Assembly (NCBI GenBank): GCA_964035545.1 | Contig: OZ037766.1 | Location: forward strand, 30,042,074-30,106,073 | From: Bugula neritina | Taxonomy: Eukaryota; Animalia; Bryozoa | Direction of reading: 5' to 3' | DNA length: 64,000 bases | Part shown: positions 7,790 through 59,040 of the stretch, piece by piece | How positions within the stretch are numbered: the first letter of the stretch is position 1 | How the letters are laid out: the number at the start of each line of letters is the position of its first letter | Translations under genes and position numbers: made by a program | The notes under the pieces: model-generated | Database searches by the model: none | Seen by the model: the letters and a program-made list of their open reading frames with translations, nothing else | What the model was told of the DNA's origin: nothing

Positions 7790-10700
7790 TCAGTTGCTTT
7801 TAATGCACACAACACAAGGTACAGCTTTCTGCTCTACCCAGAGTCCTCTACCAGATCTAACCAGCTTCACTTCTGGAGCTGCAGGATCTGTACCGTATCC
7901 TTCTGTTACTTCAGGGTTTATATCCATACATATTGATTGTGATGTCCCATGTTCTGATTCAGCTGCCATCAAGTATCCGTGATAGGCCCTGAACCACTCT
8001 CTGCCAGCGTTACAAGTGTTCCAGCCAATCACAGTAATCTATAATACAGTAAAATAAACGGTCAATTGTCATAATGTCTCCAAATATTATTGCTTATTTC
8101 AAGAGGTCAACATAGTTTTATTCTAAATACATTTTTATAATTTGGTTCCTCGGTAAGTTTGAAAGAAATCTAGAAAATTCTACTACTGTGATATTATAAA
8201 CCATTACAAATAGATAATGGAAACCAACATGATAAAACACAATAATGATGCATTATATTATGAAACCTTTACTTTTATAAAAATATTTTAGGATAAAAAG
8301 CCTACATCTAATAAAATTGAAGTATCTATTATCATTAATTTTCTAAATTTGTTATTCCATCCTAGAGACTAACGATTGAGAGTTATAACTCTGCTCATAC
8401 CATTTCAGCTTGAGGAACCTGACACAGAGCACATCTAATGACCTTGTTGTGGTAGACATCAATCAGAGGTTGAACACCAGTTCCACTCAGATTAAACCTG
8501 GCAGCTACTAGTTCTGGTCCAGATTCTAGTGTAACTCCTTCTGGTTTTATCTGATTAGGAAGAGGTGCGCACTGAAGTGTTCGGGATCCACTATTTGCAA
8601 GTCCAACTACATACCCTAAAGAGAAGAAATGAAGAGCATGTATACTATTGATCTGCAGTCTGAATAAATGTGGTTAGTTTTGGCAGACACATTGCTGGAA
8701 TCTGAGAGCATATTCTAGTATTATTATATAATGGTAGTGAAGGAGGCAAAAGTTCTTTAAACAGTGACTAAAGGAACTTTTAAATACACCAATAAAAGCT
8801 GTAGCCAAAATAACATACGGAAAAAAGTTGACTATTAGCTGCAGCTACTATACCTACAATGTGATGATTCAACTTCATATAAAACATTTCCTTTATGTTT
8901 CAAATTTTAAAATCAAATATGTAATATGTTTATAATCATTTTTCAGCATGGGAAATAACATAGATATGTGTCTGTGGCATTCAGGGCTTTCAAAACACCC
9001 ACAATTAATTGCATTCTATTTAGCACTACATTGATAAAATAACACTTTAGAATACACTTTTTTTCACATATAATTATATAGTTGATAATATTTTATATAA
9101 TTATCATTCAATCTGATATGAAATGTGATAAGAGTAGTTTGCAAAAAACTATGTGAAGATTTTCTTCTGTTCTTATATAATCAGTAACAGAGAATAAATT
9201 CTTCCAAATTTTACTAATAAACAAAAAAGCCCCAAAACATTTTGCATTTACAACTAGAAACTCACCATCATAAAACTTTTGTCCAAAAGTGCACCCAAAT
9301 TTTCCATATCGAACAAAAGTGACCTCAACTGTAAAAAAGGCAAGAAATCATAAATTGTATACTCTTTTAGAACATTATCTTTAGTTTTAGACAATGAAGC
9401 TGATGAGCTAAAATTGTTCCTCGACCAATTTAAAGTTCTATAACAGGACTGTGAGTTCAAATAACGGATTGCTAAAATAATTTATGCCAATATATTATAA
9501 TGTTTTATTATAGTTTTATAAGTAATAATTATAACTTATAATACTATTAGTTACTGATGGATTTACAAACCCACAAACTCAGGTGTACCTTGAACTCCAT
9601 CTTGACCTCGATCACCAGGAGCTCCATCAAAACCAGGAGAGCCATCTCTACCAAGTTTACCGGGTTCACCACGAGCTCCAGGTTCACCACGAGCTCCAGG
9701 TTCACCACGAGCTCCATCTCTACCAGGTTCATCACGAGCTCCATCTCTACCAGGTGCACTAGGAGCTCTATCTCTACCAGCTGTACCAGGAGCTCCATCT
9801 TGACCATCAAAACTATCTGCACCATATCTACTTAGTGTAATAAAATCTCTATCTTGACCAGTTGTAACAAGAGCTCTAGGGTGACCAGGAACCTCAGCTG
9901 TGCTATCCCTACCAGGTGCGCCCGGAACTCTAGATTGACCTGGAGAACCATCTCTACCAGGTGCACCAGGAGCTCCATCTTGACCTGGAGAACCATCTCT
10001 ACCAGGTGCACCAGTAGCTCCATCTTGACCTGGAGAACCATCTCTACCAGGTGCACCAGGAGCTCCATCTTGACCTCGATTACCAGGAGCTTTATCTTCG
10101 CTAGATGTGCTTGAAGCTCTATTATTCTGTGTTGATTGACTTGTTTGAGTGGTTAATTGTGGATTTTGAGAATCTTGAATTTTTATTCTCAAGTCTTCAG
10201 GTGACAGAGAGAGAACACTCAGTGTAGCCAGTGCTAATGGGTAGGTCACTGTAGCAGCTGGAGAGTCTACTCTTGATGGAATAACTACAACAGACCTTTT
10301 ACAAAGTTATCTTATTTAACGCTGGAGCGAGATTTTTGACAATCTGATTGGTAAATTGAAGCAGCTGCATAAAAATACAGAACCATTATTTCACTCATTT
10401 TTAAAACAACTATATAGAAGTAATTTCTATTGCGATCACCCGTACTGGACTACGACCGTATAGGTGTGAAGGGTGTGAAAAAAATAAATTTTATTCTATA
10501 GCTAGATAGCTTTAAAAACCTAATGTTTTTAATTATTATACGTAGTATTAAGTGTTATATAGTTAAAATTAGGAAAGTTAAATTATGTACATACAATCTT
10601 ATGTACAGTTTGCTAGTCAAAACAAAAACACCATTTTAAAAAGTTTCTATTCATAAAATCAAATTGATAGTTTGCTTCAACATCTACTATTAAATAGGCA

Positions 10701-12177
10701 ACTTGCTGATTACTTTATTTTCTATACCTAAAATCTTAGCACCAAATCCTCTAGCCGTGATTGAAGAATCTGTCCTAAAAGAGATATAAATTGGTCCATT
10801 AAATTCTATTAAATTTCGAGTTTCATTTATTCCACAAAGCCTTTGTCTTGTAAGTAGGGGACCTGTAGAGCTACCTCCCCTAACCTGAAAAGAAATTGTT
10901 GAATTTTTTTATAAAGCTGTTAAAGCTTTTATTTAAATTTTAGTGATCACAATCAAATTGCTTACTAATATTAAATTGTTTGCAGCTCAAGTTTGGTACC
11001 TACACCTGACAATTTGAGAAGCAATGATTTTACATGTAAATGAAAATTTGTACAAACAATTTTTTACTATACACACCAGAACTTTTTATATCACTATTAC
11101 TTCATTTTTTACAGTTTGTGGTTTCCTAATGCAATTATTGTTTTCATAAAAACATTCTAAAAATTATACATATATAATTTCCAATGCAAGAAAAAAAAAC
11201 GTCAAAAGAAAATTAAACTAAGTTAGTAGCTCCTTTGAAACATAGTATATTAGTAAAAAAACCCAAAAAACATTTTTATACACTGAATTTTATGTTAGAT
11301 AACAGGAATTTTTTGAATTTTGTATTTTTAGTCTAAATACAGTTACAATTAAAATTTTCCAAGAGTAATAGAGTGTTGCAATACCTCAATGTAATCATAT
11401 ACACAATTGTTGGTTTTCTCTACAAAGATTGGTTCTTCAAACACAAGTCTCAGTGACTTCTCATCTAACAAAGCACTTCCTTTATAGGCCTCCGGCACTG
11501 GGAATCTTAATACAAAATTCCATTCACAGAAGAGATTGTTGGAGTAGTTTCCAGGGTAGTTTGGAGACTGAAATCTGTAGCTTTCCAAGGAGTCTATTGG
11601 TACGTATATAGTACCCCCACACTTCACGGCTGTAACTTTACATGCAAAAAATCTATTGTACACTTCACTGAAGACTATATATATATATCTGATTATTTTA
11701 TTTTTCAATTAGCACTTTGGTGTAATTTTTGAAAATATAATTAATTTTAAAATGTTAATGATAAATTCAGTGAAAAGTATTACTGAGAATGATAATCAGC
11801 TATTCGTTTCAACAAGCAAACCATTACTTGCAGCAATAGCTAATATATATTACATTTATACTTACATTATGTATATGAATTGAAGCTATAATTATTTTGT
11901 CATTTCTATCTTAAAATATTATTGCTTTAAAACCACATTGCGTTGGTATTTTTTCTATCAATGTGGTGGTTTCCCTGAAAATAGAGGGTCCTGCATGGTG
12001 CATATGCTTAAATGTATTTTACTATAGATTTGTTAAACTAATTTACATAACATATTGACATTGCATAATGATTTATAGATTCAATGTTTTATGAGCCTCA
12101 CTATTAAACAGTTATACGATCATTCAAAAGTATCAAAGGGATACATTTGCAATTAGTTTTACTATACCTAAACATAA

Positions 12178-12273
<96 letters not shown>

Positions 12274-14419
12274 ATTCAAAACATATGATAAAGGTTGCAA
12301 AATGGCCTTTTTGTTGGTGCACATAAACTTGTAAATAATAGCTTTGAAAAATAAATTAATATAAAGATAGAGATCATAGCTCGATGTCTAAAGCAACTAT
12401 CATCTATATGATATATTGCTTGAAGGTGGACTGCATGGTCAACACTGAAATAAGAGTAGTATAAGAAAGCTTTACTGACCTTGTCTTTTTACTCGTGCAC
12501 TATCTTTTCCTGGAAACCCAAGGTTTCTCTGATTGCTCTGAAAATATACAAGTTGAAAGAAATGACCATCTGCTCAAGCAAAGGCAGTAGCCTCAAACAA
12601 TAAACATGTTCAATCTAATTTTACCTGCTTGAGCAGTAGTGCTCTTATAAACAACATGAAATAAAATTGTGCTGTATTTTATATTGTGAAAGTCATGGCT
12701 AAAAATTCAACATTTTTGTATCAATTGAGAAACTTCTCGGTAAAATAAACATACTATAGCGCTATTGCACAACTTTTCAATGCATTATTCAAAGTTAAGT
12801 AATTCATTTGACAATTTTCTTTGATTTTCACTGATTCTCAATATATAATCTTTAACAACTCTTGTTACTTATAATCAGTCAACTAAGAGTTCTATTTAAA
12901 CAAAGATTCTAAGCTGCAAACAGCTTTTTACAAATAAAGCTTATTTTATAGCTTCCTTTGACTTGGGTAAGTAATTATCCATATTTTTGCAGCTGAAGCT
13001 GAATTATAATTTAGTGAAACTCAATGGTAGATTTCACACAGTTTTATTTATATGGACAAGTTGCCATTTCTAAAGGTGTTACAGTTAATGATAGTAATAT
13101 TATGAATGTAGTAATTGATGGAGCTAAAATTTCACATAGGTTGCTATGACTACCTATAGCTATATAATTCACATGAGTTGAAAGGTTATTATAGTTACTG
13201 CAAGCACTAAATGTTATAGATGACAAACCTAATCTTCTGTCAGTTGCCAATGAATAATTACTTCGTCTACACCTCAAGGAAAGAGATTTCAGCCTGACTA
13301 GGATGTGGTGCTACTTCGTACCAAGCTGAGTAAGTCACCAAATTATTGTTGTGTAGTACGTTAAGTTAAGCTCCAATGAGGTGTTCTGATTTTCTATTTT
13401 AGTAGTAGAAATTATAGTCGTAATGAAATATGTTTGTTGTACATACGTAAATTTGCCAGTTGGCAAGAGTTCATATAGTATAGAATATAGACATATTATG
13501 CACATGTAATGTGCTTGTCCACACTATTTCCTATATGCATGTGTGATTTTGCTGTAGAAACTAACCGGCCTGCATGTATATGAGCCAGATTTTGTTACAC
13601 CTGCATGAAAGGCCTCTACTCTAAACAATTTCCATGCAATTTCGAAATATTTTAGGTTTTATTCTAAGACTACCTTTGCAATATACAAGTTTAAAAAAAT
13701 CATTCTTCAAGTGCCAATTACTACCACGGGTATATTTAGCATATTATATATACGGTAAAAGGATAATCTAATATAGAATATATTATATTTATCTATGTAG
13801 CAGATATAGCACAATATGTCTTTCATTTAAACATTATTTGTTTAACAATTAATTAGTGTATATTTATGTTGACTAGTATATATCAGTTTTCAGATGAAGT
13901 AATTTTAATCTCAAGCAGAGTTATAGTTTTACTGCTAACTCTGTCGCAGGATGACTTTTGAAAAACATAAATAGGCTTTTATTAAAAGTTTGCAAAAGCT
14001 AAGTAATGTATTTGCTGGGTTTAAATAGCAGTGTACACATATTATAGCTATAACAAATTATTAGGTGTCACTAATTGTTTGTTGAGCTTTAATTCAATGA
14101 TTTTTAGTTTGACCTTCTTAAACTATATTTCTTTGATCCATTAAATTCTGCTCTATAGTGACTGAACATGCAAAATTGAAATAACAGAACAACTTAAATC
14201 AATACTTACTCTGTTTACTATATTTGATTGGGTAACACTTTCCTTAGATAAGCTCTCGTGTTGAGGTGGCTGAGAAATATAGTTTGGTTGTCTGTAGAAA
14301 GTTTCAAAGAATGTAAATCCACATAAAATGAGTGTGAAAAGATGTAGACAGAAAAATACTGTTGAAAATACTTTCATCTTGTATTTTATTACAATGAGCT
14401 CTTCCTCTTGCAGTCCCAT
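7790..14419 (-). CDS. Paralog A: type II TM - furin site - CUB - collagen - spongin/short-chain collagen C4-type NC1 domain, about 630 aa
   Basis: Exons 14419-14210 ([24 protein letters not shown]), 12537-12480 (SARVKR|Q), 11629-11385 plus 10884-10728 (CUB: CGG...[18 protein letters not shown]...CVYDYIEV...LCG...[12 protein letters not shown]), 10284-9589 (linker plus about 55 Gly-X-Y triplets), 9328-9266 (FVRYGKFGC), 8615-8401 (GYVVG...LQC...CALC) and 8038-7790 (GWNTC...YHGYLMA...ICMD.NPE...CVVC). Phases are continuous. The collagen-exon donor is the least certain boundary. Confidence 0.85.
12180..12270. repeat. (TA)n microsatellite in an intron of gene A
   Basis: Perfect dinucleotide run. 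Confidence 0.97.
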
Positions 14420-15252
14420 GATGCTTTGATTTGTAATATTTCACTTTGCAAGATAATTGAGCACTATTACAGTACAGACTGCATTATTATGAGTTATTAT
14501 TGAGGTTAGTTTTATTAATACTGCCAGCTTATATAGCACGGTTTCGAAGTTAAGAAAAGATCATCTTTATTGGATAAAAAAAGCATGATATTATCTCCAT
14601 GGTGACATAGTTCAAAATCAATTTTCTATAATTATTCTATAATCTTATGAGTAACTCAGCTAAGCCAATTTCACAATATTAGTTTCTCAAAGATTTTCCA
14701 GTGGTCTATAATAAAATATAAGTATGATTATGTTATTATGTTAGTTCACAAAAAAAACTTCGAAGATTTTATTATTACTTTTTGCATTGAAAAGGCAACT
14801 TTATGTCTGGCTATTGGAATTGAATTATAATGAGTATAAAAAAATGTATGTGGTTATAGCTTGGTACTCTACACTCATCTTTCAATCTAAGGCTTTACCA
14901 TAATCTGATGAAAATATTCATGTTTTCTTTCAAACTTTTCATACAGCATCACATTACACCACAGCTTTTATTATATTATATTACATTGCATTAGACTACC
15001 CTGTATTATATTATCCTGTGTTTTATTATTTATAATATACTATTTACAGTATAACACTACAGTATAGTAGGTCGTATTCTATGTTTTATTGCACTATTAT
15101 ACGAGTCACTTTTGTATTCAAATACATTGTATATTATACACTATACATTCTATTTCATAACTTTGTATTTACAAGTACTATTTTTAAGATATTTTGCTAC
15201 GTCATATAATATTTGGGTTCAATATTTAGTTATGAAGTTGTTTGAATTTGTA

Positions 15253-15512
15253 TATATGCTCACACATATATGCTCACAAAATGCTCTCATATGTTTATAA
15301 TTTACTCTTATGCCCTCATTATTCATGCTCTTAGGTCTATTATTTAGTGTCATGTACTAAAAGTATATAATATATTTATAGTACATGACACCAAATAATT
15401 TGCCTAAAGCATGAATTATAACGAGGGTACGAGAGCAAATTATAGACCAATGAGAGCGTTTTGTGAGCATATGAGAGAATAATGGCTAAACACTTTATTG
15501 TGAGCATATGAG
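15253..15512. repeat. Foldback/MITE-like inverted repeat upstream of gene A
   Basis: 15268-15290 ATATGCTCACAAAATGCTCTCAT pairs with 15450-15472 (1 mismatch). Inner arms at 15301-15328 and 15409-15439 are also complementary. Confidence 0.5.
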
Positions 15513-17016
15513 ACGTAATAAGTAAATTTTTGACCCTTTGGCACTCTATAGCCGTGCGTGTTGCAGGGTCATTATATAGCAAAAATAAAATATAATTTTC
15601 TCATTTACAATTAGCTCTTTGAGATCGGCTTGTAAGTTCTTTGCCCCTAAGTGATACAGCTTGCGTTGATTTAAATTGTTGACTCCTAAGACTATATAGA
15701 CATATTTTCAGCAGCAAACTTATATTGATGGACCATACAATATGCCTACCATATCCTAAAGCCTAGATTAGATAAACAAGTCTAATAATTATATTTGAAA
15801 TGTTATCACATATAAGACACAAATTAATATGGATTATGGAGTATATGCGTAAGTACTTCTGATCTACATTTATCTTATTTCCTGGTCTGTCGTCACTGAA
15901 TAGTGTTCAAATTGAAACTAGGAAGTGCCAATAAATCATAGTACGAGGATACAAATTGTTAATGTGTCTTCTAGGCAAGAAATGATTTTAAATTTGCCAA
16001 TCAACATGCAGTTAACTAAAATTTTTTACAACATAATCGATTCCATCAGTGAACTACCGATGTTTTTTTGCTATATACGTAGCAACAAGTATAAACTTGC
16101 AGAAACTGAGAAAAAATTTAAGTTAGTGTGCTTATAATAATAGATTAACCAACCTACTTTGAGAGAGTGTGAACAAATGTTGATTTTGTAAAGTAACTGC
16201 CCATTGAAAATTGAGCAGCAAACCTCCAACTAGGAAGCTAGCATTTAACAATTAGGCTTTAGGGGCTACTGCATGAGTAATCACTACACCACATTTCACT
16301 GCCCCCCACTATTCTAGCTTGTCAGTTTTTGGGCTCCACCAGCCCATCAACACCTTAGGAGCAGTAGCACCCAACAACACCCGCGCAGGGCTGAAATAGC
16401 TTGTACTTAGAATATTTCTTTAGGGGTTTATAATGGACTTTTTTCCACAAACACTAAACACTGACTGGTTATTTGCTGAATGCTTATATATAGCCAATTA
16501 CTTTATAAATGATAATATAATTAAACTTTTCTTGTGAATTCAAAAAGTTACATCAAAGAACAGCAGAAATTTTGATTTGATCATATTGCAGTTTCAAAAC
16601 TAGTTACAGACAAATTACATGGTTTTCGTGGTATGGCTGTGGTGATGTATTTGTTATATGGTTCATTGGTGACTATGTTTATTGGAAAGTATGGTACTCA
16701 GCTTCCAACGTTTTTATTTTTAATATAAAAGCTGCTGTGTCATAAGTTTTACACCAGCTATTACATCAAATCTAAAAAAAATAATTTTGAAAATATTTTG
16801 ATTTAATTGCATATTGCCAAATTAATCAATGAGTTTAAAATCAATAAGGCTATACCGAAATATTATCATGGGTTGCTATCACTGCAACAAATATTTTATT
16901 TATTGTGTTGGCAAAAAATATTATGAATCAATGATAAAGAATTGAGATACTTTAAACAAAAGGCCATAAGTACAGATGAAGAAAATTATAATGATCAGAG
17001 TTATATTTGTTTTGAA

Positions 17017-23586
<6,570 letters not shown>

Positions 23587-24104
23587 ATTTCTATTGCAGT
23601 AATCTTTCACGTAGTGTGTCGAGATATAATCTTACACTTATTATTAAGACTCTCAATTTCCATTATTTAAGTTGAAGTTACCATAGTTACAAGCTTATCT
23701 TTAATAAGTAATTTTATCCAATATTATTATTCATATATTTACTGCATATTTTTATAGATGTGTCTTTCCTAAATGAAACTCACCTTTGCAAACACATTTT
23801 TGGTAACTAGAAAAATGGTAAAATCATTTTCTAGCTTTGAGTTGCAGTTTAAATAAATTAGATCAAAATCATCAAACTTTAGCATAGCAATTGTGAAATT
23901 TTAGACAGTTTATTTAGTAGAAAAATATGTAAATGAGCAAGTAACACAATTTCATAAAGGATTGCAAAAGAAGAATACCATAAATACAATCACCTATTAT
24001 TATACAATATGCTTTTATTTTTCATACATTATCAAAACTTGTACAAAACACACACTTGAGCAAACTTCAGTTCATGCATGGCCATATGATTATTTGTGCA
24101 AAGT

Positions 24105-27100
24105 TTAATTGTTTTTAATGCACACAACACAAGGTACAGCTTTCTGCTCTACCCAAAGTCCTCTACCAGATCTAACCAGTTTCACTTCTGGAGCTGCAGG
24201 ATCTGTACCGTATCCTTCTGTTACTTCAGGGTTTATATCCATACATATTGGTTGTGATGTCCCATGTTCTGATTCAGCTGCCATTAAGTATCCGTGATAG
24301 GCTCTGAACCACTCTCTGCCAGCGTTACAAGTGTTCCAACCAATCAAGGTAATCTATACACAATAAAATTATTAGTCAAATGTCTTCTTAAATCAAAATA
24401 TTGCTGATTGGTTGAAGTGGTCAACATGATTTTATTCTAGATACATTGCTACGTATTATGTGATCACTTTGATTTCTTTTTTAAGCTAATACTTTTCTTT
24501 GAAAACTTCAACCCCTATTAAAAGCTGTTACAAACTACTGCAATGCTAATTAAAGAAATAATGTACTATGGTGGCGATATTGTAAAACGTTTACCCTAGT
24601 AAAAATAATTTTAAATTAAAAGCCTATTTATATCTATTCCAATTTATATTGTTTAGTACAAAATTTTCCAAGTTTCGAATCTGTTCTGAAACTAGCTCAT
24701 TTTTAATATATCTGCAGTATATAAAATTACGTATTGCGATTTCAATTTCTTTACAATATTGAAAGCTGCATTTCTACTTACTATTTCAGCTTGGGAAACA
24801 TGACACAAGGCACATCTGATAACCTTGTTGTGGTAGACATCAATCAGAGGTTGAACACCAGTTTCACTCAGATTAAACCTGGCAGCCACTAGTTCTGGTC
24901 CAGATTCTAGTGTAACTCCTTCCGGGTTGATCTGATTAGGAAGAGGTGAGCACTGCAGTGTTTGGGATCCACTATTTGCAAGTCCAACTACATACCCTAA
25001 AGAGAAGAAAGGAAGAGCATGTATACTATTGATCTGCAGTCCAAATAAATGGGGTTAATTCTGGCGCCTACATTGCTGGAATCTGAGAGCATATTCTAGT
25101 ATAGAATAGTAGTGAAGGGACCAAAGAATTTGTTGTACAGTGACTAAAAAACTTCTAAACACAAAATAAAAGCTTTTTGGCTGAAAAATATGAGAAAGTT
25201 GACAACTGGGCCCAGCTACTACCAACTCATATGTTTATTCAACTTTATACAAAATATGTTTTGTATTGCAAACTTTAAAATCTTTCATGGTAAGTTGTTA
25301 ATTCATTTTTAGCATGTAAAATGACATAGATGTGCATACAACTTACAGTATGTATTTTCAAATAGCAAATAATAACTTTAATTCCATTCTGTTTATAGCA
25401 CTTGATGAATGAGACAATAAGATATTAATGAAATATGTATAATATTCAGTAGAGAACAGTATATATATAATTATTATCCAATCTGATTTTATTTTCATAA
25501 GATTTGCTTGCAAAATAATTATGTGAATATTCTGACTTATTTGTATAGTCACGAGCACAAAGAAATTGTTCTAAATTTTACTAATAAGGAAAACTGCCCA
25601 AAATGTTTTGTATTGACAATTACAGACTCACCATCATGAAACTTTCGCGTAGAAGGACAACTAAAACTTCCGTATCGTATAAAAGTGACCTCAGCTGTAA
25701 AAAAATGAAGAAAATTAATTTTGTGCCTTTTTAGGATATTATGCTCTATATAGCTTTAGACCCTAGAGCCAAAGAATAAAAATTGCACTTGTATTAATCT
25801 GGGCCCTTAACTAACATTGCTAAAACAATTTATGCAGTTGTACAATAATTCTTTATATTGTTGAAAGTAATAGTTATACAATGTCTTAATGTCTCTATAG
25901 CTACTGATTGGTTTACTATTTCTTGATAACCAGGTGTACCTTGAACTCCAGTTTGCCCAAAAGAACTAGCTATGCCATCTCTACCTGGTTGACCAAGAGC
26001 TCCATTTTGACCTGGAGAACCAGTTATGCCATCTCTACCTGGTTGACCAGGAGCTCCATTTTGACCTGGAGAACCAGCTATGCCATCTCTACCTGGTTGA
26101 CCAGGAGCTCCATTTTGACCTGGAAAACCAGCTATGCCATCTCTACCTGGTTGACCAGGAGCTCCATTTTGACCTGGAGAACCAGTTATGCCATCTCTAC
26201 CTGGTTGACCAGGAGCTCCATTTTGACCTGGAGAACCAGTTATGCCATCTCTACCCAATGTGCCTGGAATTCCAGCTTGACCAGGTAATCCAGCTGTGCC
26301 ATCTCTACCTGGCTGACCAGGAGCTCCAGGTTGACCTAGGGAGCCAATTCTACCAAATGTGCCAGGAACTCCAGAGTGACCCAGATAATTAGGTGCACCA
26401 TCTCTACCAGGTGTGCTTAAAGCTCTGTTATTCTGTGCTGATTGACTTGTTTGAGTTGTTAATTGCGCATTTTGAGCATCTTGAATTTTTATTCTCAAGT
26501 CTTCAGGTGATAGAGAGAGAATACTGAGTGTAGCAAGTGCTAATGGGTAGGGCACTGTAGCAGCTGGAGAGTCAACTCTTGATGGAATAACTAAAACAGA
26601 CCAAACCTGATTATCCTAGTTAATGCTGAAACGTGATTTCTGACAATTTGATTAGCAAATTTAAAACAGATACATAAAAGGTAATCACAACTTGTTTTTT
26701 GGAACAATTAAAAGTGATGTGTATTTTTTAACTAATCAAAATAGTATAAAATATTATAGAGCTAAAATTAGAAAAGTAGTTAAGTACATACAATTTTATG
26801 TACACTTTATTATGCAAGATGATCAAAATCTTAAAAATTCCTAGTCAACATCTAATGTACTAATAACCGTGTTTTCTATATACCTGAAATCTCAGCTCTA
26901 AATCCTTTAGCCGTGATTGAAGAATCAGTCTTAAAAGAGATATACATTGGTCCATTAAATGCTATTGTAGTCTGAGTTTCATTCATCCCACAAATCCTTT
27001 GTCTTGTAAGTAGTTGACCTGTAGAGCTACCTCCCCTAACCTGAAAAAATGAGATGTTGAATTCATTTGATTAGAACTTTATTTATTAGTTTTTTAAAAC

Positions 27101-30100
27101 TATAGTGAAGTCGAATTGCTCAGTAAATTTGTACGCTCAAGTTTGGCAACTACAATTATTAATTTGAAAAGTAGTAATTTGAAATAAAAATTTAATATGA
27201 ACATTTTTGATTACACAGATATTTTTCATACTATTATTATCTATATTTTTTACAGTGATTTGCACAATTTATATTACACATATATAAACATTCTAAATTA
27301 TACATAATATTATATATGTGACTCACAATGCATGAAGAAGATATGTTGTCAAAAGTGTTTTAAATTTAGGTAATATATATAGCGCACTTGACTATAAGTA
27401 GCATTTATGTTATCAATATATTTCTTTATACACCGGTCTCATGTTGAATATGGCAGAAAATTTTTAAATTTTATACTATTATTCTATGCAGTAATAATAA
27501 AAAAATTCCCAAGAGTAATAGAGTGTTGCAATACCTCAATGTAATCATATACACAGTTGTTGGTCTTCTCTACAAAGATTGGTTCCTCAAAAGCAAGTCT
27601 CAGTGACTTCTCATCTAACAAAGCACTTCCTTTATAGGCCTCCGGCACTGGGAATCTTAATACAAAATTCCATTCACAAAAGAGATTGTTGGAGTAGTTT
27701 CCAGGGTAGTTTGGAGACTGAAATCTGTAGCTTTCCAAGGAGTCTATTGGTACGTATACAGTACCCCCACACTTCTCGGCTGAAACTTTACATGTGCAAA
27801 AAATCTATTGTACACTTTTCTGGAGAATATAATATATTATATAGTTAGCTATTTCAATTTTCAAGAGGTCTACTGTTATTTTGAACATATACAAACAGTT
27901 TACAATGTCAATAATACTATGCTTTTAAAATAATTTTTACACACAGTGATAACTAATATTATGTTTATCTTTATTATTTATATAAATTTGCTGTTTTCTG
28001 TGATTAGAATTTTAGTTTACTGTACTATAAAAATATGATGCTTGTATTTTTCTTTTTCAATGCGGTCAATTTATGCATGCTTTTGTATTACGCCATCAAA
28101 ATGTTACACTAACTTACAAAAGTTGATATGATATATTAATTAGATAAAATCTTTCATATACTTACCACAAATGATTGCTAATTATTATGCAACAGCTTTA
28201 AAGTCATATTCATTTGTAATTAGTTTATGACACTAACAACACAATAGATATGTTATTCAAATCATGCTAGAAAGGGTGCAATGTGAGCAGTTTGCCATTA
28301 CACATAGTGTAAACATCTAGGAAAACAGTCAAAATAAGGAGCTTCGTGTAAAAATAAAGACAGTGGTGTCTAAAGCAGCTTCTATGATGCATTAGTTATA
28401 GAGGTGGGCTGGTCCAAAGTAAAATAGGAGTATATTCAACAAACAATGCCTTACAAACCTTGTCTTTTTACTCTTGTGGTATCCTTTCCTTGAAATTCAA
28501 AGTTTTTTTGTTTGATCTATAAAACATACAAATAAACAGTAGATAACACAGAAAAACCAATACATTTTTAGGCAAAGACAATAAGACAATAAATAATGTG
28601 TATAATCTTTATCCTTAGTATAGATAGCTTTAGCAATCCTGAATGGTTAGTAGGATTCCTATAACTTGAAAGTAAATTATACTGCATTTCACACTTTGAA
28701 AGTAAAGGCGCTAAATATATAGCTACTGCAGAGTTTTGAAACCGATATAGAAAGTTTTGCAGCACACTGAAGATATCTATATATAGCACAAAATCTTGTG
28801 CATAGAATGTAAGGAACTAAAGAAGTGTCAGTATCCGAATGGCAAAAGAGGCTAGGCAAACTTATTTATAGTTATGTTATATACTGTTGACATCCTTTAA
28901 CCATTTTTTATTGCATAATATTCTTTTAATGATCACTAAATTATTCTGGCTGTACATTTGCAAACAGTGAGATTCGTAGGCTTGTTAATAAGATACAAGT
29001 AGCTTTTTATAAACAATGCTTTTTTAGTTGACTTTGATCTCTGTACCTTATAATGCATGTTTTTGCAACTGGTTGCATTATATTTTAATGAAAATCAATG
29101 ATGAAATTCAGGTAGTTTAACTCAATTAGTTATACAGACAAGTTGCCATCTGTAAAGTCTCTACTCATTCCAACGTTATGCAGAGGAGTAATAGGGATGA
29201 TTTGACGGGTATTGGTTGCCATGACTACTTAGCTATATAGCTTGCATGAGTTTGAAAGCTACAAGCACTTGTTATAGATGACAAAATTAATCTTCTGTCA
29301 GTTGCCAATGAATAATTACTTAGTCTACACCTCAATGAAAGAGATTGCAACCTGACTAGGATGTGGTGCTACTTCGTATCAAGCTGAGTAAGTCACCAAA
29401 CTATTGTTGTGTAGTACGTTAATTTAAGCTCCAATGAGGTGTGCTGTTTTCTATTTTAGTAATAGAAAAAAAGCTCAGACAAGTTTATTATAGTCACTAG
29501 CCCTGTGAAAGCCCCTGATAGAAGGGGTTTTTGTAGTGTTAAGTTTACCCAGTGGTTCCCGTGGTGTAATGGTTAGCACCATTGAACTATAACCCCTTAT
29601 AGTTTCAGTTCAGTCGTTAGCACACTTGCAAGCCGAAGGTCTCGAGTTCAAAAGTGGGGGCAAAATTATTTTACAGTTTTCTGTTAAATCGGGCTAAGAA
29701 CTTATTCAGATGTGGCACAGGAGCAATTATGATTGGATGCTCTTCCTATAACAACGCGAATGGCCTTTGCGGGTTTGAACCCATGACTCGGTAGTTTACT
29801 AAGCCAATGCTCTAACCCCTAAGCCACGGCTGCTCCCCTATATAATAGTAGAAACTAGAAACTATATTATTATAATAATTTTTGTCATACGTAAGTCTGT
29901 TTACCAGTTGACAATAGTTGCTATAGCATAGACATGCATACATGTATGTAATGCACCTGCAGGCAGCAGCATTTCCATTGTTTTACATGCATTCACACTA
30001 TATAGAATATGACCAGCATGTATAGCCAGTTCCTGTTACCTTATGAAGGTTACTCCATTTTTTCACAAAATTCAGTATTTGATTATGTGATTATATGTGC

Positions 30101-30786
30101 ATATACGTTAAAAACCTGTTTTGATGAATCTTACAAATCACAAATTACATTTTGACTGATACATTGTATGTACATATATTAACATATACAATAAGCAAAT
30201 ATAACCTGAAAGACATATGGCACTATAATATCTATATTATTGCCATTATGTTTTGCAAACTAATTGGTAAATAGTAAATCTGTCATTCACAAAAACGCAA
30301 TCGTGTTTTAAGCAAACTTGTAATTTTGATACGAGCTCTGTTGCAAGTGCGAGAGTTGACAAACGTAAATATAGTAGTTTAAAAAAAACTACTCAAAATC
30401 TAAAGAAGATATTTCATGGGTTAAATCACGTGCAATTAAGGTGGCCGCAACAAATTTTTAAGCTGTCAGTAATTGTTTGTTGAAGTTTTGCTTTTTTTAT
30501 CTAACTTTCTTTCGTTCTGTGCGGTATGGTGACTGAACAAGATTGAAATAATAGAACTAGTTAACTTCATACTCACTGTGTCGTCTATATTTGATTGGCT
30601 AGCGCTTTCTTTAGATGAGCTCTCATGTTTAGAAGGCTGAGTAATACAGCTAGGTTGTCCGTAGAAAGTTTCAAAGAATATAAATCCACATAAAATGAGT
30701 GTGAAAAGATGCAGACAGAAAAATACTGTTGAAAATACTTTTATCTTGTACTTTATTACAATGAGCTCGTCCTCTTGCAGTCCCAT
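24105..30786 (-). CDS. Paralog C: type II TM - furin site - CUB - collagen - NC1-like domain, about 615 aa; closest relative of A
   Basis: Exons 30786-30577, 28516-28459 (TTRVKR|Q), 27779-27535, 27040-26884, 26590-25940 (about 52 triplets, including five 18-aa [18 protein letters not shown]-type units), 25694-25632, 24996-24782 and 24353-24105. Exon sizes match A except for the collagen exon. Confidence 0.86.
29466..29838 (-). mobile_element. tRNA-derived SINE (family X, copy 1) in intron 1 of gene C
   Basis: Minus-strand head GCAGCCGTGGCTTAGGGGTTAGAGC...TAGTAAAC...GGGTTCAAACCC (A and B boxes, tRNA-Thr-like) and a T-run tail. Absent from the aligned intron of gene A. Homologous to 46029-46342. 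Confidence 0.75.
29532..29675 (+). mobile_element. 144-bp TGTA...TACA element with a tRNA-like core and 5-bp TSD (family Y, solo-LTR/TRIM-like), nested in SINE X1
   Basis: Flanked by GTTTT on both sides (29527-29531 and 29676-29680). Contains GGTTCCCGTGGTGTAATGGTTAGCAC (A box, resembling a tRNA-Gln 5' end) and GAGTTCAAA (B box). Confidence 0.75.
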
Positions 30787-35648: not shown

Positions 35649-39105
<3,457 letters not shown>

Positions 39106-40781: not shown

Positions 40782-43180
40782 ATGGCAGAGAAACTATCAG
40801 CTAGCTTATCACAAAATGTGAAAGCTTTACTCCTGCTATTTGGATTATTTCACTTAGCAACACTAGCTTTTTCTGGATATCTACTCCATCAAGTTATGAC
40901 TTTAAAAAATGACGTCTATAATATACAATCTGCTAGCACACCAAGTAGTTGGGAGAAGAGCTCAGGTGTAAGTTGACTTATATACAAAAAAACTTAAAAT
41001 TATATTATACTAATGTTATTTATTAGAATCTTTGATAAAAATGATATAATACTTGTAGACTTGTAATGTAAAATGGATGCGAAGTAATACTGTGTATATT
41101 TTTCTGGTATATATTATGGTAAATAAATAATTGAAAGGGAACATTATAGCCACATAGTACAATTGTAATATTATTTCTTTGCAATATTTTTTTAGATACC
41201 CCCTCAGACTACCAATGGCAAATTCAAAAGAGCAAGTAAGTTTCTTTGTAACTGCAATATGATCTTTACTAAGTAGACCTCACAGATTAGATATTCATCA
41301 TTTTCAACGAAAAATTTAATGTTGATAGCTTGAAGCTATTATAACATCTGAAGTGTAGCATAAATACATAAATGAATATAAAACAAGCTAATTGAGTATA
41401 AAGAAAGATCCACTTTTAGGAAGTGCTTAATTTAAGCTGTGTTTATAGCTTGTGTTATGAGACTTGCGTAAAAGTAGGAATTTCAAGGTTAGTGAGCTGT
41501 TTCAAAGATAATTCACATAGGAGTCAATAAAGCATAACAAACTATGATATGCAACATGTATGTGAACTAACTTAGTACAGTGTATGTGAACTAACTTAGT
41601 AGTGTATATGAGAACTAAGTTAGTAGTTTATGTGAACCGATGCCTGCATTGCAGTTCCAGAACCAAACTCACCTTCACCTTGTGCCTGTGACTGCTCATC
41701 ACAACAGAGCTCAGTGCACTCTTTCACTAATTGGAGAGAGTACGTACGTACTTTCAACAGAAGAGAAACTCCTTGCGTACCCGGGCCTCGTGGGCCTCCT
41801 GGGTTCAATGGAACAGACGGAGCTCCTGGAGCTCCAGGTTTGCAAGGTCGAGATGGGCTGAAAGGAGATCCTGGGCAAGATGGAGCTCCAGGAACCATGG
41901 GCGCTCAAGGTGCTCCTGGTAGGGATGGAGAGCCAGGTAGAGATGGACCTCCTGGCCCACCAGGTCTTGATGGGTTTACACCAACCGAAAGTAAGAATAT
42001 AGTGCAGGCGGAATAAAAAGATGCCTATTCAAGTTTTAAATAAGTGGAATAGATAGATATTTTGCAAAACAATTTGTACTGCCTTATTCAAATAAAGTTA
42101 AACAATAATGTCATTTTCAAGCCTTTATAAAACATTCTATATATATTTTGCCTATCAAAAAGACTTACAACTTTTATGTATTCTGCAGTAATGAATATAC
42201 TATGTTTTAGTAGCATAACTTTTGCTTTTAAAAACAAGTTGGAATAGTTGATGCTATGATATGAAATGGCTCTTATTTCTTAAAAAGCTGTTTGTTTTTA
42301 TTTTAGGAGTATATACAAAGTTTATCAACTGGGGAAAATTCTCCTGTCCACACAGGGCTTTTAAAATTTATTCAGGTAAACATGAAGACTATAAGCTTTT
42401 TGAAGAAATTTAAAGTCACACCCTGCTGATCTACTTTGCTTATAATTATTTATATACTAATACAGGTTATGCTGTTGGATTAGCATCAGGATCTAACTCA
42501 TTGCTCTGTGCACCATCATCTAATACTGTCACACAGCAGGATCCAGTACTTCTATCTGGACCAAAGTTAACAGCAGTTCGGTACAACCTGCAAGGGGCCC
42601 CCAATCAACTAGATGACTCTCAGTTCCACGGCCAACTAGTCCAGTGTACTCTCTGTCATCATGCAAGTGCTGAACTGGTAAAGTAGCTTTTTTTCCATTA
42701 GCTATTAGTGTTTTAAAAAAAATTTTCTTGTAAAAAAAATTATTTACTTACCTCCAAATACAATTTTTATTTTTAATACTAATTAAGCAAGACTTTTTGG
42801 TTTCTGAGTAAATAACTTGCAAGCAAACATCAATAGCTAGACATCCCTGTTTTGCACTAAGTTTATATATGAAATAATTCTAATAAACTCATTAGCTTCA
42901 TGCTATGTTGTAGTTTACTGTGACTGGGCAAGCAAACTGCAATTTTCCCGACACCAGTAGTTGGATCCTTTCTTACTCTGGATATTTGATGACAGCAGAA
43001 CTTGAGGGGATGACATCTGAACCCATCTGTGTTGGTACTGAAAACCGTACAAGTCCAGCTTCAGTTCAGACTGAGCCACAGCTACAGGCACTGAAGTTTG
43101 TAAGATCTGGACTGGGAGTCTGGAGTGAAGACAGGGTCATTGAGTGTGCCGTCTGCTATAAAAGACCAATTCTTAATTAA
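40782..43180 (+). CDS. Paralog E: type II TM - KFKR - CxCxC - collagen (22 triplets) - NC1-like domain, about 369 aa
   Basis: Exons 40782-40967, 41196-41235 (NGKFKR|A), 41655-41990 (PCACDC...[10 protein letters not shown]...), 42307-42375 ([10 protein letters not shown]), 42466-42677 and 42914-43180. Frame is continuous. Confidence 0.88.
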
Positions 43181-44571
43181 ACTGAAACTATTGTATTTCA
43201 CAAATTTTTTGATTTCATTATACTATATATTAATTCTGTATATATTGCAATCATTTATAAATATAGAAAAATATATATATTTCATTGCTTATATATATAT
43301 AAATTAAAATTTGAAATTTTTTATGCCCCATTAATCTACTACATCTAATAATGCTATATAACCTTATTATAAGTTCTACTTCTACATATAAAATTCCATA
43401 CTTTTTCATATCACAACTTATACTTTTACTAAAGTTGGTAATTTTAGTTTTTTTCAAGTATAAGAGTGTATTTTGCAATAATTCATAATCTGAAAAACCG
43501 TTATATTATAGATCATAACACAGGCATATCAGTTTGTAAAGGAAGCAATTGGTTATAGCAATAAATTTGGTCTATATTATTATGGTGCTTACTAAATTAA
43601 TTATAGTAACCATGCAATGCTGGAATAAATTATGTCATTTTTTCATCGCAACTACGCATTATAGCTTAATCAAGTGCTTTAAAGTTTGAGAAATATTTTC
43701 ACTGAAGTATAATTGCTCAACTATAGTTGGGAACATCCTAGGGTGGACATTTGTATGAACCTTAATTTTGCTTTATACATTAAATGCTAAATATAACTCC
43801 TTGGCAAACCATAAAATACCAAAATATTCACCACTATGATTTTATTTTATATATCTATTTTGACTATATATATTATACTGCCTAAATTAGATAATTTTGT
43901 AAGCAATGCCATGTTAAAACAAGCCCTAATTATCAGATACAAACTTTGGATGTAACAGCATAGAAGCAATTGTTGACTATATGATAAGTATTAATTTATT
44001 TGCATTTAATATTATGTTTTATAATGTTTTAATTTGAATAGACGTTGAAATGATGTTTTCAGCGTATGTATGATTAGTATACATGGTTTAAAACGCTTTA
44101 AAAATGTAGCGTAATCCATGACCTTGTCTATTCTCAGATGTTATCAGGAGTTATTTTCTCAGTATAGTATCAATTTACATTGATGAAAATTATTTGTAAC
44201 AATCTACTTTTCTAGACCAAGCTAAAGTTGAAAAACAAATAACATATAAAAAAATTAAACATACTGTATTTTTAAGCAGGCAGTTTAATTTCCATGACCG
44301 CAAAGTATCAGTTATATATAAATTGTTTTAGAGTAAAGACCCAATTAACTTTCAAGTTATCAAAGTACTTGCAGTTAAGGAAGCACTTTATCCATTACTC
44401 TTATTATTATAAAACTATTGCAGGCTGACCACCTGCTTTTATAACTTGAAGTGCAAAGTGCTGAATATAAAATACATCATATTTCCAACTAAGCTACGTA
44501 AGTATTTGTATCGCTAAAGAGTATGAGCTGTTTAGTGCAACACTCCGTGTGCTTATATGAATATTTTTATG

Positions 44572-44855
44572 CATATCACATATCATATATCATATATCCC
44601 ATATCACATATCATATATCATATATCACATATCACGTATCACATATCATATATCACACATCACACATCACATATCACATATCATATACCACACATCATAT
44701 ATCACATATCATATATCATATATCACACATCATATATCATATATCGCATATCATATATCATATATATTATACCACATATCATACATCACATATCATATAT
44801 CACATATCACACATCATATATCATATATCACACATCATATATCACATATCATATA
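44572..44855. repeat. Degenerate (CATAT/CACAT) low-complexity repeat between E and F
   Basis: Mixed 5- and 7-nt units; source of the YHIS-rich ORFs. Confidence 0.92.
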
Positions 44856-45361
44856 TAAATAAATTCTTTAACGATTGGGAGACGACTTGGCACTTAAACT
44901 ATGAAAGCTGGTCCACTATATACACGTATGCAGGCTAATAGTTATGGTGTTGCATCGTTACAAACATGGCGTTGCTCATACGCTATATATATATATTATC
45001 ACTAATACTATATTTGGCTAAATATACATTTTCCTGAAGCAAAAATGCATGACTCATGTTAAAAACTATTAAACTTCAAGATATCTTTACAAGTTAACTA
45101 TAATAGCATATCCTTATATTTATGTAAATTATTGAGGAAGCACGCGTTTAACTTTCTTATTCATCAAATTTAATGACTTTAAGTTATAACTATGATATAC
45201 GTCTGCAAGAAATTGTATATAAAAGTAAAAAACAATAAACCTCAAAACTTCAATGGTGTTTCTACTTATCAAGCAATCATCGTTGGACTGAAACACATGC
45301 AATTGCTAAAGTGTTTTACACATAGTGCCACACTATAGTTGTAGATAATAAGAGTAGAAAA

Positions 45362-48300
45362 ATGGTAGAAAAGGTTTCACCTAGCTTATCACAAAATGTG
45401 AAAGCTTTACTCCTGCTATTTGGATTATTTCACTTAGCAACACTAGCTTTTTCTGGATATCTACTCCATCAAGTTATGACTTTAAAAACTGGCATCTATA
45501 ATATACAATCGCCTGACACACCAAGTAACTGGGAGAATATTATAACTTCAAAGGTAAGTTAGCATCGTATTACTTAAACGTAATATTTTTTATGTTACTT
45601 CACTAAACTTTGGTAATGAGCTTCATGTTAAATATTTGATTCAGCAACATCCAAGCTAGAATTACATACATATAATAGAAAATTTTACAGCTTAGTCATT
45701 TGAAATGAACTCACTTCTTCTGTATAGTATATGGTGTAAGTAAAATTAAAATATGCTAACACATGATATCTGAATTATAGAAAATTAATCAAATATTGCT
45801 TAAAATACTATTTTAGCCAAAATCTGAAACTATCAAGAACAGATTTAAAAGAACGGGTAAGTTTTTCTTCAATTGTAATTATTTTTTGAAACTATAATAG
45901 GATAAATAAGTTATTATGCAATGTGGTCTCCTGCATTTGATTTGTATATAATATTTCTCTAAAAATTTATAATGGTTTAACTAATAATTAATGGTAAAGG
46001 AGTATACTATATCAAGCAATTGCTATTAGGAAGCATGCAGCCTGGTCTAGGGGTTAAAGCGTTTTTTCCTATAGTATATTGAAAAATAATTTTGCCCCCA
46101 CCTGTTGTGCTACCATTACACCAGGGGGGCCACTAGGTAAACTCAACACTACATATATATAAGTACGAACCCATGGTTTTAAGCCCCGAAAAAGGTCATT
46201 GGTGATGTTAAGAAAAGCATCCAGTTATAATTGCTCTAGTGTGCCTAGCTCTTCTGAATAAGTCCTTATAGCCCAATTTACCAAAACCCCTTTTATTAGG
46301 GGTTTTCTCACAGTGACTATAATGAACTTGTGTGAGCTTTTTCTTAAGCAATTACAAATATAGATTAAACTCAAAACAAAGATATTCTGTTCTTTTAGTT
46401 GCTGTCATTTTTAGTATATGTGTGTATTAACAACTTTTGCGTTAAAAATTTCATATCATTACAAAAAATTCTTTAAATAAAAAGGCATTAAGTGCAACCG
46501 TTATTAGTATATATGCCTTAGATTATTTCAGAATTTAGTCACATAATTTTTTTTAGGTAAAACTGCCTTTGAAGTAGAAGTCTTATGCATATATTAATAT
46601 GTGCTCTGCCATTTTCATTGATTCTCTTATAACTGAAACATAAAATGAAATGAGATAAGCAACACAATTTGGAATTTCAGTTTCAGTATAAGTAATATTA
46701 TTATATATAGCAAACTTTCGATATATTGTAATTAATTTTGATATTTACCTGAAAAAAATTTGCACTATAGCATATATATTATTGCAATATAATATAAGGT
46801 TTCAATCAAAATTCCTATATTTGCTTATGCATGAGCACCATTTCTCTGAGCGTTGTCAACCTGCCCCATTCTTATTGAAATAAGACAAACAGTTTGCATT
46901 TACCCTTAGTTGTGACAAAGTCATAGCAGTTTTAATTTGTAAGTTTTAAAAATAACATAGAAACAATTGTAGTCAAATGTGTTTCCTGATGTATTGAAGG
47001 CACTGCAAGTGTTGGATATTTTAATTGAGGAAACGTCAAATCATGCTAGACATTAAGTTCTATTTTGCTTTTGCCTTCCAAAGTAATAATTAGGTCAGAA
47101 TAAGAAAATAGAACATACAACAGCTATAAAATAGAAACATGCACCATAAAGTCTCAGTGCTAATTAGTTAGAGCGGATCTTACGGAGTATTCTCTGCATT
47201 ATTTGAAAATTTAGCAGCTCTGTAGTTGTACAACTAATTTAAGCCTTATTGTTCTAGACTAGAGTTTGGGCAACTCATGCACACAGTTAATATAATGTAT
47301 GCATGGCTGTTTATACAAGTCCGCTGAATAATACAAACATATTTTTTAAGCACATACATTGCAAATTAAAATGACTTTTCTATATAGTTTTAAACTAATC
47401 CATCCATCAATTGTTTTTATTATTTTTGAAAGCATTTATATGTACTCAAACATAAATAATTTGAAAAGATTATTGAGCAGGACATTAAGTTATTAACAGG
47501 GGTAACTAAAAATAAATTTTTCCCATTGTTATCACATTGACTGTATCTTACTTTTTGTAAATATATTTCTCTGTATCATGCAGTTTCCGGACGAAACTGG
47601 TCCGCACCTTGTTTCTGTAACTGCTCACCAAGAACCTGGTCTGCAGTGACCACAGACCGGAGACAGTCCTGGCGTACTCTTAACAGAAGATCTCATTCTG
47701 CTTGCATTGGCTTACCTGGACCTTCCGGACCACCAGGTCCTCCCGGGCCTTCTGGGCCCTCTGGACCTCCTGGGCCTCCAGGACCTCCTGGACCTCCTGG
47801 GTCTTCTGGACCTCCAGGTTTTGATGGAAGAGGGCCAAGTCAAAATATGCTAAAAGGAGATTCAAATTCAGATAGAGTTTTAGGAGATGCAGGTTCTGCG
47901 GCAACTCCTAGTAGAGATGGACCTCCTGGTACACCAGGATCTACAGGTACACCAGGCCGTGATGGTTCTCCACCTGTAGAAGGTAAAAGTATACTAAAGA
48001 GACAAATTTACAAAATTGACTAAAGAGCTGTTGAAATTATGGCATTGTAATTTTTGCAGATTCAAATAAATTATTTGGACATAAAATATCTATCTAAAAA
48101 TATGGGAATATTATAATTCTATGAGGTATCACCATGTTATTTTTATACAATTTCGCATGTAAAGGTATTTTGAATAGTTACTACACTGTTTTAACAAATA
48201 TTTTCGTATTGGATATAACTAGAATAAAACATATTGCTGTTCAACAGCTAGTTCTATATTTATTTGCATTGTAGGAAGAGATGCAAAATTCATCAACTGG

Positions 48301-49411
48301 GGAAAAGTTTCATGCCCACACAGGGCTAGTAAAGTTTATTCAGGTAAACCCCAAGATTGAGCCTCTAATAAAAATAAGTGCAGCTTTAATCTTGATTCAC
48401 CACACTAAGTTATAAGGACTGTTTTGTTCTTAAATAAAAAGTATAGTTTATATATTAAAGGTTATGCTGTTGGATTAGCATCAGGATCTAACTCATTGCT
48501 CTGTGCACCATCATCTAATACTGTCACACAGCAGGATCCGGTACTTCTCTCAGGACCAAAGTTAACAGCAGTTCGGTACAACCTACAAGGGGCCCCCAAC
48601 CAGTTAGATGACTCTCAGTTCCACGGCCAACTTGTTCAGTGTACTCTATGTCATCATGCAAGCACTGAGCTGGTAAAGTAGCCTTCTCTTTGCCTTTCTT
48701 ATACTGCAGTGAAATATCATTCAAAGCTGTTCTGTTTCTCACCTTCAGCTTTTGCAGACAACCTAGGCCAACAGGACAGTCTTAGCTTGCAAGTGCAGAA
48801 TTGGTCAGAGCTATAGTGAATATATTCAGTTATGTTTATAGCGAAAATATCTCAACAGTTTAAGTGATGTAGCTATAGGGTGCGTAAAACCTAATATATG
48901 CCAAGTGTGAATAATAATAAAATTATACAGCAGTGAAAATTCACACTATACACCAATCTTGTTCTCCATATCTGCTGTTTAGAACTTTTCTCTCTTTATA
49001 TTAAACCTTAATCTTATATCAACTGACTATATAATGGCAAAACTTATAATTTATGATTGATTTCTGTTAAATTCATAAATTAAGTTATGTTTTGTCAAGT
49101 AATTACTTATAAGAAATTTGAACTTTCAATTTTTTACTTGCTATTATATGTTGTAGTTTACTGTGATTGGACAAGTGGACTGCAATTTCACTGACACCAA
49201 CAGTTGGACTCTCTCTTACTCTGGATATTTGATGACAGCAGAACTTGAAGGAATGACATCTGAACCCATATGTGTTGGTACTGAAAGCCGTACGAGTCCA
49301 GCATCAGTTCAGACTGAGCCACAGCTACAGGCACTGAAGTTTGTAAGATCTGGTCTGGGAGTCTGGACTGAAGACAGGGTTATTGAGTGCGCCGTCTGCT
49401 ATAAACAATAA
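45362..49411 (+). CDS. Paralog F: type II TM - furin site - CxCxC - interrupted collagen - NC1-like domain, about 388 aa; closest relative of E
   Basis: Exons 45362-45553, 45817-45856 (KNRFKR|T), 47584-47982 (PCFCNC...ACIGLPGPS...), 48275-48343, 48461-48672 and 49157-49411. Frame is continuous. Confidence 0.88.
46029..46342 (+). mobile_element. tRNA-derived SINE (family X, copy 2) in intron 2 of gene F
   Basis: Co-linear with the reverse complement of 29466-29838 (TAGGGGTTA.AGC head; AGCATCCA.T.ATAATTGCTC; TCTGAATAAGT; AAAACCCCTT; GTGACTATAAT.AACTTGT.TGAGCTTTTT tail). Confidence 0.7.
46080..46153 (-). mobile_element. Family Y element (internally deleted, 74 bp) nested in SINE X2
   Basis: TG...CA ends with TATAT on both flanks (46075-46079 and 46154-46158). 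Shares AAATAATTTTGCCCCCAC and CCATTACACCA...CCACT.GGTAAACT.AACACTACA with Y1. Confidence 0.72.
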
Positions 49412-58023: not shown

Positions 58024-58655
<632 letters not shown>

Positions 58656-59040
58656 CACACAAGTATGGTAGTCATGACCTAATTTCCAGCTCTGCTACTG
58701 GCCGTGATAGAAGCCAATATGAGTTATTTCACTTAACCTAGTCATACAGGATTTTTTTAAATTGCTATCATCTCATTAATGTTATCTGCATATATCATGA
58801 AAATATTTTTTCAGTATCTACGACTTTTCACAACAGAGTTAGTCCAAAAATCCACCAGCATAATATTCTACCGGAAAGGTGATTCGGAGTTGTCGTCCTA
58901 CTTATTGATGAGTCGTAAATTGTAGTTGTAGATAATTTTTTCAAAAATATGTTTTAATGGAATAATTTTCTAAAGTTTTTAATAAATAATTAATAAAAGT
59001 GACAAGTTGCTAATTTGTGAATTCAGCCCATTTATGACAA

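Follow-up and report, generated by a model that had tools for sequence, protein, structure and literature searches.

At positions 7790-49411 of the window, by which we mean the whole 64,000-nt stretch of Bugula neritina DNA that was analysed, six paralogous genes form a tandem cluster and belong to a derived branch, apparently peculiar to bryozoans, of the spongin short-chain collagen (SSCC)-related family. Their predicted products combine an N-terminal hydrophobic segment, a basic convertase-type site, a variable stalk and a C-terminal head with eight cysteines. Splice modelling placed G1-G3 on the minus strand, with eight exons each, and G4-G6 on the plus strand, with six exons each. The predicted features are as follows.

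7790..14419, minus strand: G1, 632 aa
14419-14210, minus: G1 transmembrane (TM) exon, E1
12537-12480, minus: G1 RVKR exon, E2
11635-11385 (E3) and 10884-10728 (E4), minus: G1 CUB domain, PF00431
10284-9589, minus: G1 interrupted collagen of 36 triplets, E5
9328-9266 (E6), 8615-8401 (E7) and 8038-7790 (E8), minus: G1 8-Cys head
17017..23586, minus strand: G2
23586-23383, minus: G2 TM exon
21612-21558, minus: G2 KVKR exon
21101-20857 and 19955-19799, minus: G2 CUB domain, PF00431
19305-18775, minus: G2 Ser/Asn/Thr-rich, non-collagen stalk
18235-18170, then a GC-AG intron, 17759-17545 and 17268-17017, minus: G2 head
18554..18766, minus: open stretch rich in Asn, Gly and Phe, 71 codons long, with a phase-1 donor at its end
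24105..30786, minus strand: G3, 617 aa
30786-30577, minus: G3 TM exon
28516-28459, minus: G3 RVKR exon
27785-27535 and 27040-26884, minus: G3 CUB domain
26590-25940, minus: G3 collagen of 46 triplets
25694-25632, 24996-24782 and 24353-24105, minus: G3 head
35649..39105, plus strand: G4, 384 aa
35649-35828, plus: G4 TM segment and short heptad neck
36703-36739, plus: G4 RLKR exon
37300-37704, plus: G4 CxxxC and collagen of 18 triplets
37811-37879, 38127-38338 and 38854-39105, plus: G4 head
40782..43180, plus strand: G5, 369 aa
40782-40967, plus: G5 TM exon
41196-41235, plus: G5 KFKR exon
41655-41990, plus: G5 CxCxC, second basic site and collagen of 22 triplets
42307-42375, 42466-42677 and 42914-43180, plus: G5 head
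45362..49411, plus strand: G6, 388 aa
45362-45553, plus: G6 TM exon
45817-45856, plus: G6 RFKR exon
47584-47982, plus: G6 CxCxC, second basic site and collagen of 20 triplets
48275-48343, 48461-48672 and 49157-49411, plus: G6 head

The models were joined from predicted exons and their support is comparative; spliced models were analysed locally, and database searches and fold predictions were done exon by exon. All six gave open spliced frames with GT-AG introns, save for the one GC-AG intron in G2, and intron phases were common to G1-G3 (0,1,0,1,1,1,0) and to G4-G6 (0,1,1,1,0). The closest named matches of the window were Bugula neritina gene fragments, and B. neritina contigs were only ~75-89% identical to it in DNA, which makes the two most probably sibling lineages within Bugula. 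Contigs of a sibling lineage, at ~80% genomic identity, kept the splice sites of the G4 orthologue (10 of 10, contig L001), of G3 (14 of 14, contig L015) and of G2 exons 1-3 (also L015). In this comparison, the identity of exons was mostly above that of the flanking introns and indels within G4 exons stayed in frame. The dN/dS of G4 against L001 (Nei-Gojobori, small counts) was 0.26 overall, 0.34 in exons 1-2 and 0.13 in the head, and these ratios show purifying selection on the modelled gene. Contigs L018/L019, from a sample labelled BRYA16-1, carried a TM exon, a REKR exon, two CUB exons and three head exons in the order of the cluster, with the head split at the same positions, and two probably bryozoan contigs (L021 and L022) held TM-CUB-head and collagen-head versions in tandem. 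The sole match in a single-exon word search was a sibling fragment, a metagenome scan with the last-exon profile gave no match, and searches with P0092 and the last exon returned canonical members only, no full-length member of the derived clade being among the matches listed. Judged by the open spliced models and by the splice sites kept in the sibling Bugula lineage, the six genes are real, in agreement with the six-paralogue family described in the first-pass annotation. The anatomy given there was largely confirmed, the exceptions being the collagen of G2 and a motif in the hydrophobic segment.

All six genes had been described as collagens. The collagen domain PF01391 was matched in G1 and G3-G6 and absent from G2, where a Gly-X-Y run was sought and none was seen in the Ser/Asn/Thr-rich stalk. 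Because G2 lacks Gly-X-Y, only five of the six genes encode collagens, and the claim was discarded for the family as a whole. In addition, G1-G3 carry a two-exon CUB domain (PF00431) that the family-wide description had omitted. The last exon of G2 in the assembly lacks the acceptor AG held by its paralogues, with an A at 17270, and the next in-frame AG lies at 17325. In DNA run X1, a 353-nt contig at 17241-17593 agreed with a simulation carrying an intact AG, and on this fit of the contig boundaries we rejected a missing AG fixed throughout the species. A G2-type contig in the same run showed a 1-nt deletion at 17144, so that null alleles of G2 may be carried. The donor-ended stretch at 18554-18766 lies 8 nt past the G2 stalk donor, out of frame with the stalk exon, and may represent either an alternative exon for the stalk or the end of G2 exon 5 after a frameshift.

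Each protein contains one N-terminal hydrophobic segment, encoded in exon 1 (Kyte-Doolittle 19-mer 1.87-2.58, start residue 13-20), which is the only strong hydrophobic segment in any of the six. An N-tail of 10-16 residues, with a net charge of +2/+3 in G1-G3, precedes an uncharged stretch of 22-27 residues. The proposed hydrophobic segment was thus present in all six, and the F.L(L/F)H motif that had been assigned to it fits G4-G6 only; the invariant pattern is F-x-x-[LF]-H-x-x-T, with His and Thr conserved inside the segment. Because the uncharged stretch reaches at least 22 residues, the N-flank is positive in G1-G3 and the polar residues are invariant, we consider it probable that exon 1 encodes an uncleaved signal anchor with type II insertion and a cytosolic N-tail. 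The argument is weaker for G5 and G6, in which hydrophobicity is modest (1.87), the flanks are neutral and small-residue cleavage sites are possible.

The basic [RK]-x-K-R site was found, as claimed, in all six proteins at the end of exon 2: RVKR in G1 and G3, KVKR in G2, RLKR in G4, KFKR in G5 and RFKR in G6. It occurs exactly once per protein and nowhere else in 2983 residues, with ~1.1 occurrences expected by chance in total, and a REKR site in an exon of its own was also present in another bryozoan contig (L018). Furin prefers Arg at P4; G2 and G5 have Lys at this position. In G5 and G6, a second R-x-x-x-R-R stands directly before the collagen helix. Cleavage by a convertase at the basic site is likely on this evidence, and the conservation and topology heuristics together support the membrane anchor and the convertase site first suggested.

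The head, encoded by the last three exons, spans ~175-182 aa with eight cysteines in all six proteins, and the C..LPCPPY (C..CPPY) pair is replaced by RSGxGxW in every one, just as had been reported from the first reading. The last-exon profile retrieved 102 proteins, nearly all of them SSCC-like. In hhalign comparisons this profile (A1) aligned with the canonical SSCC profile (A4) at 98.8% (E 8e-17), and A2 aligned with A4 at 57% (E 1e-4); tblastn gave E ~1e-8 to a canonical gene of the same genome. No Pfam family was found for the head exons at E<=1, Pfam being without a model for this head, and PDB sequence searches gave nothing meaningful. An AlphaFold model built for the last exon of G4 (pLDDT 84) matched ESM Atlas clusters annotated as short-chain collagen C4-like (TM-score 0.77, rmsd 2.1-2.2) and a PF01413-bearing Atlas cluster (TM-score 0.68). 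Against the PDB, the top 21 Foldseek rows for this half-head were collagen IV NC1 domains, at weak scores (E 0.63, TMq 0.43, Z 4.2); a canonical single-exon SSCC head of the same genome (pLDDT 92) matched NC1 with E 6.5e-4 and Z 6.9 over 153 residues. The NC1 matches agree with the published remote homology between spongin and collagen IV NC1 (PMC5395295). Profile comparison and predicted folds thus show the head to be homologous to the SSCC NC1, as the proposed SSCC/NC1 relationship had it.

The canonical family signature comprises ten conserved cysteines, seven common with collagen IV and three specific to spongin (PMC5395295). None of the six heads carries this ten-Cys signature with its C..CPPY pair, and on account of the eight cysteines and the replaced pair we classified them as a derived variant and not as canonical SSCC. 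In a quick head tree with SH-aLRT as its only support measure, the six heads, the Bugula gene at C2:30.47 Mb and heads from other contigs formed one long-branched clade (SH-aLRT 100). Head exons 7-8 of G1-G3 are 93-98% identical (17545-17759 and 17017-17268 in G2), the other G2 exons are 53-75% identical to their neighbours, and divergence between G5 and G6 is greatest in exons 2-3. Near-identical heads on divergent stalks point to gene conversion or to selection for a shared assembly surface. Gene conversion is the likely source of the homogenised G1-G3 head exons, and the conservation of the head (93-98% identity; dN/dS 0.13) would be consistent with a co-assembly surface.

The first-pass annotation had implied that a TM-convertase-collagen-NC1-like layout is rare, and the survey of relatives showed otherwise. 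Among 190 database relatives, 89 had an intact N-terminal hydrophobic segment; by our heuristic, 39 of the 89 had a signal-anchor-like N-terminus and 50 a signal-peptide-like one. The anchor, a strict [RK]-x-[RK]-R site, collagen and head occurred together in 22 of the 89, the strict site was present in 17 of the 50 signal-peptide-like proteins, and some dibasic site preceded the collagen in 33 relatives. TM-basic site-collagen-C4 proteins were found in Branchiostoma (RVKR), Oculina (RSKR/REKR), Owenia (RGKR), Antedon and Ptychodera, a spread from coral through annelid, crinoid and hemichordate to amphioxus. For one relative, a frame of 399 codons runs without interruption along a Logan contig of 1.5 kb that is probably a transcript. 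A CUB motif was seen in 0 of the 190. The 216 Mb of this genome gave at least 152 exon matches, which correspond to ~70 SSCC-related genes of the canonical 10-Cys type; they lie in tandem arrays that mix signal-peptide and TM forms:

C2:28.75-29.08 Mb: canonical SSCC array
C1:2.19-2.25, 2.70-2.74 and 29.59-29.65 Mb: canonical SSCC arrays
C5:14.74-14.77 Mb: canonical SSCC array

At least three of the canonical genes combine TM segment, KVKR/VEKR/REKR, collagen and head. Together with the 22 relatives, they rule out an architecture unique to the cluster. TM forms on the head tree require at least three gains or losses, and switching between anchor and signal peptide may therefore be recurrent, as in nematode cuticle collagens. 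The layout is thus common; for TM or shed spongin-related proteins no description was found in the literature, the main family paper (2006) lying outside the search, nor was a report of the ~70-gene expansion. A review of collagen-like TM proteins lists only EDA, colmedins and scavenger receptors (PMC7848082). What is new is apparently the derived bryozoan clade, with eight cysteines, no C..CPPY pair and an optional CUB domain.

Several further relatives were noted. Derived-type genes with a TM first exon, in which no collagen was detected, lie at C2:30.467 Mb (L012/L062, L062 falling within the derived clade) and at C2:29.245 Mb (L014/L063). The family has been reported absent from ecdysozoans (PMC5395295); a scorpion protein of TM-RQRR-C4-like type was observed in Centruroides sculpturatus (XP_023229445.1, P0059). 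SSCC-type subdomains are also found repeated in tandem, and some belong to environmental proteins with N-termini of non-animal appearance (P0010, P0004, P0020, P0047 and P0177).

We compared the cluster with known systems. With the SSCC family it shares the two-subdomain NC1-like head of ~175 aa, by profile and predicted fold, and a short Gly-X-Y stalk, and many database members likewise have TM segments and basic sites. The cluster differs in its eight instead of ten cysteines, the lost C..CPPY pair, the long branch, a head divided over three exons, the CUB domain inserted in G1-G3 and the absence of collagen from G2. The NC1 domain of collagen IV (PF01413) was the top PDB structural match for both the canonical head and the G4 last-exon model. 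In contrast to collagen IV, whose NC1 has 12 cysteines, the cluster shows weak NC1 scores and has no 7S domain or long helix (18-46 triplets, only in G1 and G3-G6); membership was rejected for want of a PF01413 match, of the HSQ motif, absent from all six head sequences, and of a long helix. MACITs XIII/XXIII/XXV and COL-99 resemble the cluster, by sequence heuristics, in its predicted type II TM segment, putative juxtamembrane furin site and collagenous ectodomain, and COL-99 is shed by furin (PMC4678570). MACITs have several COL domains and a conserved C-terminal stretch of 34 residues (PMC4678570), whereas the cluster proteins lack this motif, have a far shorter helix and end in a globular SSCC-like head, which excludes them from the MACITs. 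Ectodysplasin A, the colmedins (gliomedin, UNC-122) and class A scavenger receptors share the order TM-(cleavage)-short collagen-globular head; the cluster head is SSCC/NC1-like, without a Pfam or fold match to TNF, olfactomedin or SRCR heads, and the likeness is one of analogy and not homology. Nematode cuticle collagens also show TM or signal-peptide forms in one family, RxxR sites, tandem expansion and a Cys cluster before Gly-X-Y (here in G4-G6), but they lack an NC1-like head; exon 1 of G1 and of G5 matched no Pfam family at E<=1, Col_cuticle_N included. In C. elegans, 117 of 173 cuticle collagens are predicted to be type II TM proteins, 64 of the 117 with RxxR, and BLI-4 is required for secretion of the TM forms (PMC10538796).

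As to function, the first-pass annotation had offered pattern recognition, adhesion or cuticle/matrix assembly. We favour a structural role, as convertase-shed matrix or cuticle proteins, over pattern recognition, since homogenised, conserved heads are combined with variable stalks, and regard the case for it, built on comparison with known systems, as about evenly balanced. In the mechanism proposed, the exon 1 segment would stay uncleaved and serve as a type II signal anchor, leaving the N-tail cytosolic. Chains would form trimers via their NC1-like heads and, in G4-G6, also via the Cys clusters and the short heptad neck next to the membrane. A convertase of the furin/PCSK type, acting at the surface or late in the secretory pathway, would cut behind [RK]-x-K-R and free the (CUB)-stalk-head ectodomain. 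The freed trimers would enter extracellular matrix, cuticle or an adhesive layer via conserved head-to-head contacts; spacing and partners would be set by the stalk, which varies in collagen length and is mucin-like in G2, and by the CUB domain where one is present. The TM-RxxR route of nematode cuticle collagens and MACITs would be a parallel.

The genes could instead encode shed or surface pattern-recognition proteins, "defence collagens" of scavenger-receptor type whose trimeric head or CUB domain binds microbes or glycans. Type II TM-neck-collagen-head is the plan of class A scavenger receptors (PMC7848082), the family is strongly expanded in this genome (152 exon matches, ~70 genes) and a WAP-domain gene adjoins the cluster; yet homogenised heads under purifying selection are the opposite of a diversifying receptor, and an invariant convertase site is hard to square with a receptor that stays at the surface, so that we hold this reading to be unlikely. 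Rather less probable are EDA- or gliomedin-like ligands, whose freed trimeric head would bind a cell-surface receptor or an adhesion molecule during budding, settlement or the patterning of nerves. The TM-furin-collagen-head logic, the short stalks of G4-G6, a conserved head suited to a conserved receptor and the expression of Nematostella spongin-like genes mostly in neuroglandular cells (PMC12549020) speak for such ligands, whereas no receptor is known for any SSCC head, and many paralogues and NC1 ancestry favour self-assembly. The least probable reading, by a little, is plain secretion, with a long cleaved signal peptide, a basic site that removes a propeptide and no membrane-tethered stage. 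It would fit the 50 of 89 relatives that are signal-peptide-like, 17 with the strict basic site, and the borderline G5 and G6, but N-tails of 12-19 residues, uncharged stretches of at least 22 residues, polar positions that never vary within the segment and the conservation of exons 1-2 at the residue level (dN/dS 0.34 in G4) stand against it.

What spongin-related proteins do outside sponges has been a standing question since 2006, the common view being that they are simply secreted, truncated versions of collagen IV. If a form anchored in the membrane and released by convertases is indeed widespread, it would add a class to the transmembrane collagens. The lineage-specific head and CUB insertion could be markers of cuticle or attachment biology in bryozoans; the individual parts, like the logic of shedding, are already known, and the layout is not unique to this locus. 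We tentatively propose, at somewhat less than even confidence, that an ancient class of type II TM collagens shed by convertases, so far unreported, exists among SSCC-related proteins from coral to amphioxus. From it bryozoans would have built a distinct subfamily with eight cysteines and CUB domains, in which stalks are interchangeable and the homogenised heads co-assemble into a bryozoan-specific matrix, cuticle or ligand system.

The surroundings of the cluster contained other elements. Next to it, at 3332-5090 on the minus strand, lies a small gene for a secreted product, two exons of which encode WAP four-disulfide-core domains (PF00095). Broken reading frames at 58433-58678 and 59038-59962 resemble what we take to be a Penelope-like/GIY-YIG retroelement. 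An 800-bp (CA)n tract occupies 20037-20836 in a G2 intron and an ATATC-type repeat 44570-44860. Two related insertions, at 29550-29830 and 46060-46340, are probably SINEs, the 29.6-kb copy being tRNA-like.
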